From Leucoraja erinacea (Eukaryota), in NCBI RefSeq assembly GCF_028641065.1, contig NW_026576056.1:186001-237362 (forward strand): a stretch of DNA of 51,362 bases, in the 5' to 3' direction. Both the position numbers and the translations under genes were made by a program. Of the stretch, positions 35,185 through 45,594 are shown piece by piece; the first letter of the stretch is position 1, and each line of letters begins with the position of its first letter. The notes beneath the pieces were generated by a model. It was not told the origin of the DNA, made no database searches, and was given only the letters and a program-made list of their open reading frames with translations.

Positions 35185-35215
35185 ATGCCGGCATTAATTT
35201 TACTATTGCTTCTCA
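35185..35215 (+). CDS. Leader exon of V3 (MPALILLLLL)
   Basis: ATG, Leu-rich 10 codons plus 1 nt, GTAAGT donor; splices in frame to 36876 giving MPALILLLLLITSSDG-DLVLTQ. Confidence 0.75.
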
Positions 35216-36195
35216 GTAAGTAGCCTTTGGTTTGGTCTAGACGCAGTCTGGTTCAATATTACAATTGCACCTTTTTGCACGTGTAGAGTCGTAGGGCGGT
35301 TGAAGACGGTAGAAAGCCATTCGACCCGCCTCGTCCGCACGAGATCTACCGAAGAACAATGCACTCGATCCCGCTCACTTTCCTCCCTCTAACCTCGCGC
35401 CAATTCGATTCTCCCGATTACCCTCAAAGCTGATTTTGAAACGCTAAGACCGAGCCCGCCTCTACTATGTCCCAGTAATACTTCCCAAAAACCCCGCGTC
35501 CTTGGTTTTGCCATTTCGCCAAACGCCACGCGGTGACGGGGAGCACGTAGAAAGTCCACGCTGACAGCACCCGTAGTCAGGATGGATCGTGGGTAGCTGG
35601 CGTTGGAAAGCATCAACGCTACTCTTCAAAGAACACCGAGCAGCTGGTGCTACGCTGGAAGGTTTAAATTATAATGGCAGGGGCGGGAGAACCGGAGAAG
35701 CAGCTCAACAAATGGAAGGGCCGGTGAGAAAGTGGAGGTTATGATGAGTAAATCTCATAAGAAGGACAGAAAGAGAGAAGTTGTAGATAATGGACAATAG
35801 ACTATAGACTATACGGTGCGGTACTCACGTGAGGGTGGCTGGGACGGTGTTCTGGCGGTGGTGGCCTGAGTCCGGGGTTCGGCCGCGGGCCAGCGTCTGC
35901 GTCTGCAGGACTGGTGGGCGGCAGCTTCGACCACCCCGGGCCGCGGTGTTTGAGCCGCGGGACTGATTCATAACATCGCCCGGGGGGTATCGCCTCAGCG
36001 CAGAGGGAGAAGAGGAGTGAAGAGACTGCAGACCTAAGACTTTTGCCTCCATCACAGTGAGGAGATGCTGGGTGGACTCACTGTGGTGGATGTTAATATG
36101 TGTTTATTGTTGTTTTTATTGTATTATATGTATGACTGCCACAATTTCGTTCACACTTCGGTCTGAATGACAATAAAGGCTATCTCTATCTCGCT

Positions 36196-36270
36196 ATAGA
36201 CAATAGACAATAGACAATAGACTATAGACAATAGACTATAGACAATAGACTATAGACAATAGACAATAGG
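36196..36270 (+). repeat. (TAGACAA/TAGACTA)n heptanucleotide tandem repeat, probable LINE tail
   Basis: Direct reading. Confidence 0.85.
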
Positions 36271-36875
36271 CCATTCGGCCCTTCGTGCCAGCATTCAATG
36301 TGATCACGGCTGATCATCCACAGATCTTGGATTCGGTGGTAATAAGGGGCTGAAATGTATTTATTTCAATGCAAGGTGTATTGCGGGCAATCCTGGTGAA
36401 CATAAAAGGTTCAGTCTCGCAGCGGGTAGAGCTACGCGCACAGCAGAGGAGTAACAACAGATCATATTTCGCTTGGGTAGCTTCCACCACCCCCCCCCCC
36501 CCCCCCACACCCCCCCCCTGTCCCAAACTCGTCGTCCAACTCGTTCCATTGTTCTCATTCCTTGCATTCCTTCGACATTACCTCCAGTACGTTCCATCCT
36601 ACCCTCAGTCTGAAGAAGGGCCCTGACACTAAATATCACCCATCGGTTTTCCCAGAGCTGCTGCCTGCCCGCTGAGCTGCTCCAACTCGTTGTGTCTATC
36701 TTGAAGTAGAGGTCTTCCTCTTTGTAATTCCGAATGGCCTCCGTCGCCCTCAGAATTGGGGATGATCGGCCACGATCACATTGAATGGCGGCGCTGGCTG
36801 GAAGGGTCGAACGACTTATTCCTGCACCTATTGCCTGTTGTCTCCCGTCCTCATACTTCTTCTCTCCACTTCCAG

Positions 36876-37180
36876 TAACAAGCAGCGATGGCGACCTTGT
36901 GCTGACGCAGCCGGCATCGGCGATGTTGAACGATGGAGACGCTCATCTGATCCAGTGCCATGTGGCGGGCGGCGACATCATTGACCGAGTCATGTTCTGG
37001 TACAGGCAGCGTCCAGGGAAATCTTTGGAATGGGTGGTTAGATACTTCGATTCGTCCTCCGTCAGTTATGCTCCGGAGATTCGTGGCGGATTCAAATGCA
37101 CAGCCGATCGCTCGAACTTGTATTTAGAGATAAGACTGGCAGGGGTCGATGATATTGCGGTGTATTTCTGTGCAGCGGCA
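36876..37180 (+). CDS. V exon, Ig-heavy-like V (TAILV/VH-delta-like) 'V3'
   Basis: Strong pyrimidine tract and CAG acceptor. DLVLTQP..IQC..MFWYRQRPGKSLEW..RYFDS..YAPEIRG..DDIAVYFCAAA; open frame; gapless paralog of V1. Confidence 0.92.
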
Positions 37181-37218
37181 CACAGTAGTCTAACTATCGG
37201 CTGGTCTGGTTAAAAACC
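37181..37218 (+). other. 22/23-type RSS of V3
   Basis: CACAGTA (37181-37187), 22 bp, TTAAAAACC (37210-37218). Confidence 0.85.
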
Positions 37219-37569
37219 CTAAATGCAGTAAACAGCTGGGAGCTCCCGGAATGAAATTATAAGAACATAAGTGGTAGAGTTATGTCTTTATTTTTTAATT
37301 TTTAATTTAATTTTATTTTTTAGTATGTTTTATTTATTTATTATTTATGTTTGTGTTATTTGACTGTAAGGGAAATCCATTTCGTTGTCTCTTATGAGAT
37401 AATGTCAATAAATTGAATACAACAAAAGATTTGCTGCCTCACAGTGCAAGGGACCCAGGTTCGATCGTGGGTTTTCGCCGAGTTCATTAGTTCATTAGGC
37501 TGATTGGCTTGTTATAAAAGTCCAAACAACGGATATAAAGGACATTTCTCATCACATACACCAAATGCG

Positions 37570-38855
37570 ATGTCAGGACTTTCATATGAAGAAAGACTGG
37601 ACAGACTCGGCTTGTACTCGCTAGAATTTAGAAGATTGAGGGGGGATCTTGTAGAAACTTACAAAATGCTTCAAGGGTTGAACAGGCCAGACGCAGGCCG
37701 ATTTTTCCCGATGTTGGGGAAGTCCAGAACAAGGGGTCACAGTTTAAATATAAAGGGGAAATCTTTTAGGACTGAGATGAGAAAAACATTTTTCACACAG
37801 AGAGTGGTGAATCTCTGGAATTCTCTGCCACAGACGGTAGTTGAGGCCAGTTTATTGGCTATATTTAAGAGGAAGTTAGACGTGGCGCTTGTGGGGGTGG
37901 GGGGGGGGGGGGGGGGGGGAACTATCTTTCAGGGTCCCTACCTGGTCGGAGAGGCGGCTTTTCTCCGGGCTGCAGTTTCGACCCGTCCTCGCGGCCTGCC
38001 AGCCGGCCTGGAGCGGCGTTTCCTGTCGGGGACCGCCCAGAACCAAGGCTTCGGCAGCGGCACAGCGCTGGAGCGCTGTCGCGGAACAGAGCGGGCGATG
38101 CCTTGCCTGGGTCGCCGCGCTGGAGCTCCGGTGAGCTGCGGGACTGCGGAGCGGCCAACTGCGGAGCGGCGGCGTTGACTTTAACATCGGGAGCCTGGGA
38201 TCTCTCGATGAGATCGCCAGTAGTGGAGCTCCATCCGGCGCGGCCTTGTTGGCTTTGGAAGCCGCGGCCTCCAGTACGGAAGCGACCGTTCCAGGTGTCC
38301 CATGCCGCTGTGAGGGTTCTCCCGACGCCCGAGCACCATCACCCGGCGAGAACGGCCTGGAACATCGGGTCTCCGTGGAGGCAACTGTGGAGGCCTAAAT
38401 AGGCCCGACTATGGGTGAACTGGGGATGGGGACTGGACATTGTGCCTTCCCTCATAATAGGAACCATTGTGGGGGGATGTTACAAAATTCTTAAGGGGTT
38501 GGACAGGCTAGATGCAGGAAGATTGTTCCCGATGTTGGGGAAGTCCAGGACAAGGGGTCACAGCTTAAGGATAAGGGGGAAATCCTTTAAAACCGAGATG
38601 AGAAGAACTTTTTTCACACAGAGGGTGGCGAATCTCTGGAATTCTCTGCCACAGAGGGTAGTTGAGGCCAGTTCATTGGCTATATTTAAGAGGGAGTTAG
38701 ATGTGGCCCTTGTGGCTAAGGGGATCAGGGGGTATGGAGAGAAGGCAGGTACGGGGTACTGAGTTGGATGATCAGCCATGATCATATTGAATGGCGGTGC
38801 AGGCTCGAAGGACCGAATGGCCTACTCCTGCACCTAATTTCTATGTTTCTATGTT
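37570..38855 (+). mobile_element. CR1 family A fragments (37570-37890, 38480-38855) flanking a GC-rich unclassified insert; fills most of the V3-J interval
   Basis: ORF2 motifs; no RSS-flanked D seen. Confidence 0.8.
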
Positions 38856-43893: not shown

Positions 43894-44019
43894 GTAAATA
43901 TTTCGGGCACGACATGCCAAATATAGAATGTTTTATGGTGGAAATGGCAGAGAGGAATGAACAATGGAATGCACGAATAGAAATATCAAGGGACGAAGTG
44001 CTGACGGGCATCTGCATGT

Positions 44020-44097
44020 GTGGATGTGTGGATGGGTGGATGGGTGGATGGGTGGATGGGTGGATGGGTGGATGGATGGGTGGATGGGTGGATGGGT
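44020..44097 (+). repeat. (GGAT/GGGT)n microsatellite
   Basis: Direct reading. Confidence 0.9.
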
Positions 44098-44878
44098 TCA
44101 TAGATACCGAAGATGGGGTGAAGGGTATATAGAAAGCCAAAGACATAGAGAAACACAGATGGATAAGTAGCAAGATGGGCAGACAACGGCATGGCTGTGT
44201 AGATAGATGGACAGATTGGCGGACATACAGCTTGAAATACTCCGACAGAGAGGNNNNNNNNNNNNNNNNNNNNNNNNNNNNNNNNNNNNNNNNNNNNNNN
44301 NNNNNNNNNNNNNNNNNNNNNNNNNNNNNNNNNNNNNNNNNNNNNNNNNNNNNNNNNNNNNNNNNNNNNNNNNNNNNNNNNNNNNNNNNNNNNNNNNNNN
44401 NNNNNNNNNNNNNNNNNNNNNNNNNNNNNNNNNNNNNNNNNNNNAAATAAGCAGGCAAATAAGTAGATACATAACGCAAGAAANNNNNNNNNNNNNNNNN
44501 NNNNNNNNNNNNNNNNNNNNNNNNNNNNNNNNNNNNNNNNNNNNNNNNNNNNNNNNNNNNNNNNNNNNNNNNNNNNNNNNNNNNNNNNNNNNNNNNNNNN
44601 NNNNNNNNNNNNNNNNNNNNNNNNNNNNNNNNNNNNNNNNNNNNNNNNNNNNNNNNNNNNNNNNNNNNNNNNNNNNNNNNNNNNNNNNNNNNNNNNNNNN
44701 NNNNNNNNNNNNNNNNNNNNNNNNNNNNNNNNNNNNNNNNNNNNNNNNNNNNNNNNNNNNNNNNNNNNNNNNNNNNNNNNNNNNNNNNNNNNNNNNNNNN
44801 NNNNNNNNNNNNNNNNNNNNNNNNNNNNNNNNNNNNNNNNNNNNNNNNNNAACGAAGAAAGGTAGAGAAGAAGAAACA

Positions 44879-44910
<32 letters not shown>

Positions 44911-44950
44911 TCTAAGGTTAATTTAGGACTATTTTTTTCCATTATTACAG

Positions 44951-45060
44951 AGGTATCAAAGGTGAATTTCATCTCTTTGACGTTGATGGCATTGAGGGTC
45001 CTCCTGTTTAAGAGCATTGCGTTCAATGTCCTGATGACGGCTTGTGTCTGGATGATTTAA
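44951..45060 (+). CDS. TRDC: C transmembrane/cytoplasmic exon EVSKVNFISLTLMALRVLLFKSIAFNVLMTACVWMI*
   Basis: TTACAG acceptor. TCR alpha/delta TM signature with Arg and Lys (LRVLLFKS..FNVLMT). Stop at 45058-45060 followed by a GTGAGG donor, implying a separate 3'UTR exon as in TRAC/TRDC. Confidence 0.93.
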
Positions 45061-45594
45061 GGTGAGGCTGGTTCACTCAAATTGGCACATGGAAAGACAT
45101 CGTGTGGTCGCTGGTCATGTCCGTTAAAACGGTGCAACCAATATCTCTCGACCGTCCATGTCGTTTCTCTCCGCTGGTCCTCCAGCTCCGACCACGTCGT
45201 GAAGTTAGTCCTGAATTATTTAGGTTTTTAAACGTTTGCCCGCGGGAAAGCTGCTCGTCTCCCTCAGTACACATGCCACTGGTTTATATTCTGCCGTTGT
45301 ATAATGATTTCTTAACGTCCTCTGGCCATTTTGGACCTCCACCACATACAATTTCCATATCGTTCTGAAACGTGTCTATATGTGGAACCTGTCTACTTGA
45401 TCTCCATGTCTTTGTTTTATAAAAATCAATTTTCATTGATTCCAACCGTTCTGTGGCATTGTGTTTGAATTACTTGCTTTTAGTCTAGGTAGGATCCACC
45501 CAGCAGAACAGTACTACTTAGATGCATTACAACAGAAAACGGAAATCCCTGTGTGGCTGTAACCTTGCTATAGTAGATTGACAACAACAAGAAG

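Follow-up and report, generated by a model that had tools for sequence, protein, structure and literature searches.

Does a cartilaginous fish possess a T cell receptor (TCR) delta chain assembled from an antibody-like variable (V) segment, a joining (J) segment and a constant (C) region of its own, with no diversity (D) segment between V and J? The question is raised by a stretch of 51,362 nucleotides (nt) from the skate Leucoraja erinacea (assembly GCF_028641065.1, contig NW_026576056.1, positions 186,001 to 237,362 of the forward strand), hereafter the window, whose plus strand carries between positions 35185 and 45061 a cassette made up of a leader candidate, one V exon (V3), one J and three C exons. 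All positions given below are window coordinates. The data indicate that the cassette is a real second constant gene of the delta type, intact and equipped with its own J and with a V of its own that resembles the V domains of immunoglobulin (Ig) heavy chains (VH-like), and that it has no D in cis.

The cassette and its segments

The elements of the cassette are as follows, with each recombination signal sequence abbreviated to RSS, the transmembrane segment to TM and the shark TCR-delta-associated Ig-like V to TAILV.

35185-35215, plus strand: candidate leader exon, predicted from the sequence; MPALILLLLL from the ATG at 35185, phase 1, donor GTAAGT at 35216
36876-37180, plus strand: V exon V3, VH-like/TAILV-like; open frame with Cys23, Trp41, LEW and YFC, 3' end ...YFCAAA
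37181-37218, plus strand: RSS of V3, abutting the V coding end; CACAGTA with a 22-nt spacer and TTAAAAACC (7/9), or with a 23-nt spacer and TAAAAACCC (6/9)
39156-39183, plus strand: RSS of J; nonamer AGTTTTTGT, 12-nt spacer, CACTGTG ending at 39183; score 15/16
39184-39249, plus strand: single J of 66 nt, reading SNAQKNGKLVFGSGTALYVKP plus 1 nt (...KLVFGSGTALYVKP), donor GTAAGT
41534-41842, plus strand: C exon 1 (C1), predicted delta-type Ig C1-set domain (Pfam C1-set 1.6e-5)
43840-43893, plus strand: C exon 2 (C2), connecting peptide with Cys, WVRCTRKSIGWQMDDVT; phase 1 in, phase 1 out
44254-44444 and 44484-44850: two assembly gaps inside the C2-C3 intron, bordered by simple repeats
44951-45061, plus strand: C exon 3 (C3), TM LRVLLFK...FNVLMTA and a short tail, VNFISLTLMALRVLLFKSIAFNVLMTACVWMI; a GTGAGG donor follows the stop at 45058-45060

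All of the elements that the original prediction had described were found in their places with compatible phases. Every splice junction of the cassette joins phase 1 to phase 1, the exon plan is that of TRDC (an Ig domain, a Cys-bearing connecting peptide and a TM with the conserved Arg and Lys), and the donor that follows the C3 stop (GTGAGG) conforms to the pattern of TRAC/TRDC. The leader candidate is the sole strongly hydrophobic in-phase ATG..GT candidate within 2.9 kb 5' of the V exon, and no N occurs between V and J, as had been claimed. The window has four N gaps, two of which fall within the C gene. The C2-C3 reading frame is independent of gap length, the end of C2 and the start of C3 being in matching phase, and the junction (...QMDDVT / E VSKVNFISL...) is colinear with homologues such as ...TVTDIPETNFMTL.... 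The spacer from the 'C.A.H' motif of C1 to 'VNF' measures 34 residues, which lies within the range of 20-44 counted on the sequences of the homologues, so no hidden exon need be assumed. These features are consistent with continuity of C2 and C3 across the gaps.

The quality of the RSSs was compared with a chance expectation derived from 100 first-order Markov simulations of the window, in which sites were scored out of 16. At a score of at least 15/16 the window holds 4 sites, one of them the RSS of the cassette J, versus 0.0 in the simulations, and none of the 100 simulated windows reached 15. At a score of at least 13/16, which is that of the V3 RSS, there are 7 sites versus 0.77 expected. 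The cassette J carries the best J RSS of the window and is the only RSS-bearing FGXG element on its plus strand. We also scanned the whole window, on both strands, for paired RSSs flanking 0-35 nt. Just two D elements were found (2756-2766 and 3958-3970), both on the minus strand, and no RSS-flanked D was detected in 37220-39155 or in any other part of the window on the side of the cassette. The claim that no D lies between V3 and J was thus borne out, and the cassette is D-less in cis. As V3 has a 22/23-spacer RSS and J a 12-spacer RSS, a direct V3-J join is permitted by the 12/23 rule, which had also been proposed.

Type of the constant and variable domains

The constant region of the cassette appears to be of the delta and not of the alpha type, in agreement with the original prediction, because it matches elasmobranch delta chains, carries the TRDC signature and has no significant match to C-alpha. 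The C exons were searched singly, and C1 gave 21 matches when run against 1.84 billion representative proteins, the top ones being elasmobranch TCR-delta chains (E 4e-20 to 1e-7). Identity over C1 was 50-52% to Heptranchias, 43-46% to Pristiophorus and to the two-V NAR-TCR model of Mustelus, and 42% to the TAILV-type chain of Scyliorhinus, and ranked lower were genes to which NCBI gives the name 'T cell receptor delta constant', with 37% identity in Hypanus and 34% in Leucoraja erinacea. We take the NAR-TCR models among these matches to be delta chains by definition. A profile search with C1 brought further shark delta models, and the TM exon (C3) is 55-73% identical to the TM exons of elasmobranch delta chains (tblastn).

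Signatures have been described for the first exon of both genes, CLXXXFXP for TRDC and CLXTD(X)F for TRAC (Giorgetti et al., PMC10322711). C1 reads AAVCLLSEFFPKE, in which CLLSEFFP fits the TRDC signature and departs from the CLXTD of TRAC; the C-alpha of Carcharodon (P0032) reads CLATDYF. No significant match was obtained between C1 and the C-alpha of Carcharodon and Amia (E 0.003 over 31 residues and 1.6), versus E 1e-31 in the same comparison with delta. Residues invariant with shark delta are YPP, VCL, F..P, G.Y..S and the second Cys, and this conservation, together with the 55-73% identity of the TM exon, is hard to square with long neutral decay. An AlphaFold model of the C1 domain shows a regular Ig C1 fold (pLDDT, the predicted local distance difference test, 87). 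A Foldseek search of the PDB with this model returned the generic C1-set Ig fold and no delta-specific signal, the PDB sequence search with C1 was swamped by Ig lambda constants and did not separate alpha from delta, and the ESM Atlas gave only generic C1-set clusters. A TCR-gamma chain was excluded by the Arg...Lys TM and by the homology to delta.

V3 matches the Pfam V-set (8e-9), and the top 60 PDB sequence matches both of V3 and of V1, the VH-like V of the opposite strand described below, are antibody VH or nanobody chains throughout. V3 scores 75-84 bits (36-38% identity) against TAILV-type V domains from Scyliorhinus and Cetorhinus models, versus 32-48 bits against conventional V-delta/alpha. 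ESM features, however, place V3 nearest to TCR alpha/delta V clusters, and it has WYRQ rather than WVRQ. The V had originally been called antibody-type, a term that the PDB and TAILV affinities support; because of its ESM placement, 'VH-like/TAILV-like' would be the fairer description.

The canonical delta cluster and the second constant gene

The segments on the minus strand at the left of the window are listed here with the two further V segments.

3958-3970, minus strand: canonical D-delta 1 (D1), GGACTGGGGTACG; 5' 12-RSS, 3' 23-RSS; score 30/32
2756-2766, minus strand: canonical D-delta 2 (D2), core GGTGGGATACG; 5' 12-RSS, 3' 23-RSS; score 28/32
30-81, minus strand: canonical J-delta, QREKLTFGAGTELKVQP; identical to the J joined to the ordinary C-delta in P0023
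about 2405-2470, minus strand: J-like frame, KLTFGEGTTLFVEP; good donor, no recognisable RSS (best 8/16)
11436-11726, minus strand: V1, VH-like, 46% identical to V3; the V closest to the Ds in the canonical cluster
23741-24032, plus strand: V2, conventional V-alpha/delta type; open, ends CAVV, weak RSS CACCGTA ... CAAAAATAG

The transcript protein P0023 (Logan-derived) reads ...YYCA-DWGT-RD-QREKLTFGAGTELKVQP-KAKANQEP..., where DWGT corresponds to D1, RD agrees with D2's GGGAT core and the window J at 30-81 recurs unchanged; its C region falls in the Leucoraja TRDC cluster. Since P0023 joins the D1 and J of the window to the ordinary C-delta, the minus-strand array is the canonical delta cluster, and its C is located past the left end of the window. 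The canonical position of TRDC is 5'-TRDC-(TRAJ)n-TRAC-3' (PMC10322711). Through P0023 this position is seen to be taken by the other C-delta, off the left window end, and no FGXG or J-like element was found in the 6.3 kb 3' of the cassette C within the window. Between cassette C1 and the skate's canonical C-delta the identity is just 33-38%. The cassette C is thus a second C-delta gene distinct from the canonical one, and the original suggestion of a second C-delta isotype gains support from both its divergence and the pairing of the canonical C with the window D1 and J. The possibility that it is the only C-delta, in a misassembled layout, was ruled out, the canonical C-delta being a different sequence that is used with the window D1 and J.

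The layout is head-to-head, with J, J, D2, D1 and V1 pointing left and V2, V3, J and C pointing right, and the cassette lies about 35 kb from the canonical D and J segments. The original prediction missed this difference of strand: D1, D2 and the left-hand Js are in fact on the minus strand, opposite the cassette. V2 is oriented as the J-C cassette and opposite to the canonical D/J cluster, and could serve either cluster, by deletion or by inversion. V1 has an RSS of CACAGCC, a 24-nt spacer and AAAAACACC, and our search found no leader for it with confidence. A dead J is one possible reading of the J-like frame at about 2405-2470.

The relation of the two skate genes was examined in a maximum likelihood tree of the C1 domain (20 rows, 101 columns). 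The cassette C is weakly sister to a long-branched canonical skate clade (support 61/85). In the approximately unbiased (AU) test, which has low power on this alignment, no grouping was rejected (p 0.17 with alpha, 0.27 with all sharks, 0.24 with Heptranchias plus Pristiophorus and 0.46 with all batoids). In raw identity to shark C-delta, the cassette C reaches 43-50% versus 32-41% for the canonical batoid genes. Within the skates, the C1 domains of P0007 (an old cDNA-type entry) and P0009 (the Leucoraja erinacea TRDC) share only 65% identity, and such a value between two 'canonical' C-deltas reflects either fast evolution or further skate paralogues.

The interval between V3 and J had been described as mostly LINE (long interspersed element). 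It consists of copies of repeats that occur many times in the window, but its 224-residue open reading frame (ORF) has no reverse transcriptase domain. One SINE (short interspersed element) or LINE-tail element recurs at least 8 times, for example at 1140-1560, 3230-3720, 23300-23540 and 37560-37880, with further copies at 38480-38860, 40340-40800, 45600-46150 and 47160-47500. ORF remnants with RVT_1 and zf-RVT domains are present at 26133-27071 (minus strand) and 9113-9679 (plus strand), and an AT-rich low-complexity stretch (37279-37331) lies just 3' of the V3 RSS.

Readings of the cassette and its relation to known systems

Our preferred reading, to which we give a probability of roughly 0.5, is that the cassette is an intact second gene for C-delta, equipped with a J of its own and with a VH-like V lying 2 kb 5', placed opposite to the canonical V-D-D-J-(C-delta 1) and joining V to J without a D. 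The recombinase RAG would join V3, and possibly V2 and further 5' plus-strand Vs, straight to J by deletion, and the VJ exon would then be spliced to C1-C2-C3. The product would be a membrane chain with a short, D-less third complementarity-determining region (CDR3), which might pair with TCR-gamma via the Cys of the connecting peptide and assemble with CD3 via the Arg/Lys pair of the TM.

Several observations weigh against this proposal. No public protein or assembled transcript in the collections searched is more than 52% identical to the cassette, and the canonical P0023 is present there; protein word-index searches with C1 alone and with V3 alone, which cover only proteins of 56-178 residues, found no match either. 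Words of C1 occur in only two sequencing runs, both of unrecorded kind (shares 0.39 and 0.25), and in none recorded as RNA. The predicted leader is separated from the V exon by 1.66 kb, an intron packed with repeat copies and transposable elements. The end of C3 (45040-45057) reads MTACVWMI, and all of the alpha/delta chains compared have Arg at the position of the Cys (MTARVW; MTAR.W). One assembly is the source for both the cassette's orientation and its continuity over the gaps.

Inversional joining of inverted V segments is established at the TCR beta and delta loci, and direct V-to-J joins are normally rare at TCR loci that bear Ds. Both facts, the first of which is mentioned in PMC12227049, favour the strongest of the alternatives, which we nonetheless consider unlikely: a functional second C-delta that is not D-less, in which the canonical D1/D2 join the plus-strand J by inversion and V1 or other Vs then join the D, or in which distant Vs dominate and V3-J joins are rare. 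The RSS types are compatible with it and the Ds are only 35 kb off in opposite orientation; as the 23-RSS of a canonical D faces the 12-RSS of the cassette J in opposite orientation, the Ds could reach this J by inversion, after which V1 would become a deletional partner. Set against this, a V with a 23-RSS sits 2 kb 5' of J in deletional orientation, the cassette J has the best RSS of the window, and inversion would strip D1 from the canonical cluster.

It is rather improbable, in our estimate, that the cassette is a silent duplicate, structurally intact and neither rearranged nor expressed, whether as a young pseudogene in the making or as a locus devoid of enhancer or promoter. The lack of a matching transcript or protein in very large collections that contain the canonical chain would fit such a fate, as would the lack of C1 words in any run recorded as RNA, the long leader intron filled with transposable elements and the Arg-to-Cys change at the TM end. 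Lymphoid RNA data sets from skates are few, however, and all exons are open, the splice sites are consensus and both RSSs are good; that they are intact despite an identity of only 33-38% to the paralogue suggests a long time under constraint.

An assembly artefact, in which real DNA stands in the wrong place or orientation or C3 belongs to another copy (whether a paralogue was collapsed, a haplotig is involved or a gap was misjoined), is still less probable. The four N gaps of the window, of which two fall within the C gene, and its dense repeat load speak for it, but V3, J, C1 and C2 have no gap among them, the phases of C2 and C3 agree, both exons align colinearly with homologues, and a sequence 33-38% identical to the canonical C-delta is not something that misassembly can create. 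That the cassette encodes a TCR-alpha constant or alpha-like chain, as the D-less V-J layout, the 66-nt J, the Arg/Lys TM common to alpha and delta and the AU p of 0.17 in a low-power test might allow, is largely refuted and highly improbable, given the TRDC in place of the TRAC signature, the E of 1e-31 to delta with no significant C-alpha match and a Pfam match to C1-set, a single J in place of an array of J-alpha segments, 6.3 kb of 3' sequence free of FGXG elements, and a J that begins CG versus the TG reported as typical of cartilaginous-fish J-alpha.

Extra VH-delta-D-J-C-delta clusters are known from tetrapods: one is inverted within the TCR alpha/delta locus of Xenopus tropicalis, the zebra finch has a second C-delta, and chicken and turkey have an additional TCR-delta locus, unlinked or translocated (PMC3457774). 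The analogy to these clusters of Xenopus and birds drawn in the original prediction is apt, opposite orientation included (PMC3457774). As in the frog and bird clusters, the skate has a second C-delta with its own J and an antibody-like V, and as in Xenopus the unit is inverted within the alpha/delta region relative to the conventional D-J-C-delta. The frog and bird clusters differ in having D segments of their own, whereas the skate cassette, which belongs to a cartilaginous fish, has no D and shows a single V and a single J within the window.

Among sharks, TAILV and NAR-TCR delta chains have been described, TAILV being a TCR-delta-associated Ig-like V (PMC12227049). These likewise place an Ig-like V in the TCR-delta region, and V3 is nearest to TAILV-type V and the cassette C to the C-delta of these sharks. 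They are described as using the ordinary D-J-C-delta, however, whereas skate V3 comes with a J of its own and a C that is separate and divergent. The skate's own canonical TCR-delta (P0009, P0023) shares with the cassette the delta signature, three coding exons, the connecting-peptide Cys and the Arg/Lys TM, but differs from it in C1 (33-38% identity) and in being fed by the minus-strand V-D-D-J array, which the cassette C is not. A D-less delta locus is not without precedent, as the axolotl TRD locus has no TRDD genes and joins V directly to J (PMC12529555). There too a 23-RSS on the V stands against a 12-RSS on the J and no D intervenes, so that a direct join fits the 12/23 rule; the axolotl locus differs in being the sole delta locus and in using conventional V-delta, whereas the skate has a D-bearing cluster alongside and a VH-like V. 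The cassette thus appears to combine a second C-delta, a VH-like V, opposite orientation and the lack of a D, which are features of three known systems. The literature searched, which did not include key shark papers, yielded no account of such a cassette from a cartilaginous fish.

Extra C-delta clusters with antibody-like Vs are central to models of the origin of TCR-mu and other unconventional receptors, and the extra VH-delta/C-delta clusters are thought to be the source of TCR-mu itself; the published model dates the D-J-C-delta duplication 'early in tetrapods, or earlier' (PMC3457774). If the cassette is expressed, a skate second C-delta with a private VH-like V and J would either extend this history to cartilaginous fish or show the same solution evolved again. 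Provided that expression, a D-less beside a D-bearing delta in one locus would be a test case for the choice of partners (RAG targeting, the 12/23 rule and restrictions beyond 12/23), and an antibody-like delta chain with a short CDR3 would raise the question of what such a chain recognises. An expressed cassette would also be relevant to the proposed diversification of all antigen-receptor genes within a single Ig/TCR alpha-delta complex (PMC12227049).

A more far-reaching and doubtful possibility is that the cassette C is an old paralogue, as old as the shark-batoid split or older, which has kept the ancestral type of C-delta and belongs to a D-less VH-like V-J system of light-chain style in batoids and perhaps in elasmobranchs generally, a kind of fifth TCR chain that evolves separately. 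Were this true, cartilaginous fish would have their own counterpart of the extra VH-delta/C-delta clusters, the presumed origin of tetrapod TCR-mu, and either the duplication would be pushed to the base of jawed vertebrates or the convergence would be striking.

More than one C-delta is also annotated in sharks. Mustelus asterias has at least 8 NCBI gene models (P0004, P0025-P0031) with near-identical C-delta on eight contigs, and Heptranchias perlo has two C-delta genes (P0001, P0024) on one 1.7-Mb contig. Some of these copies could be haplotigs, but several copies of C-delta may be widespread in sharks, and the literature may understate how common they are among elasmobranchs.

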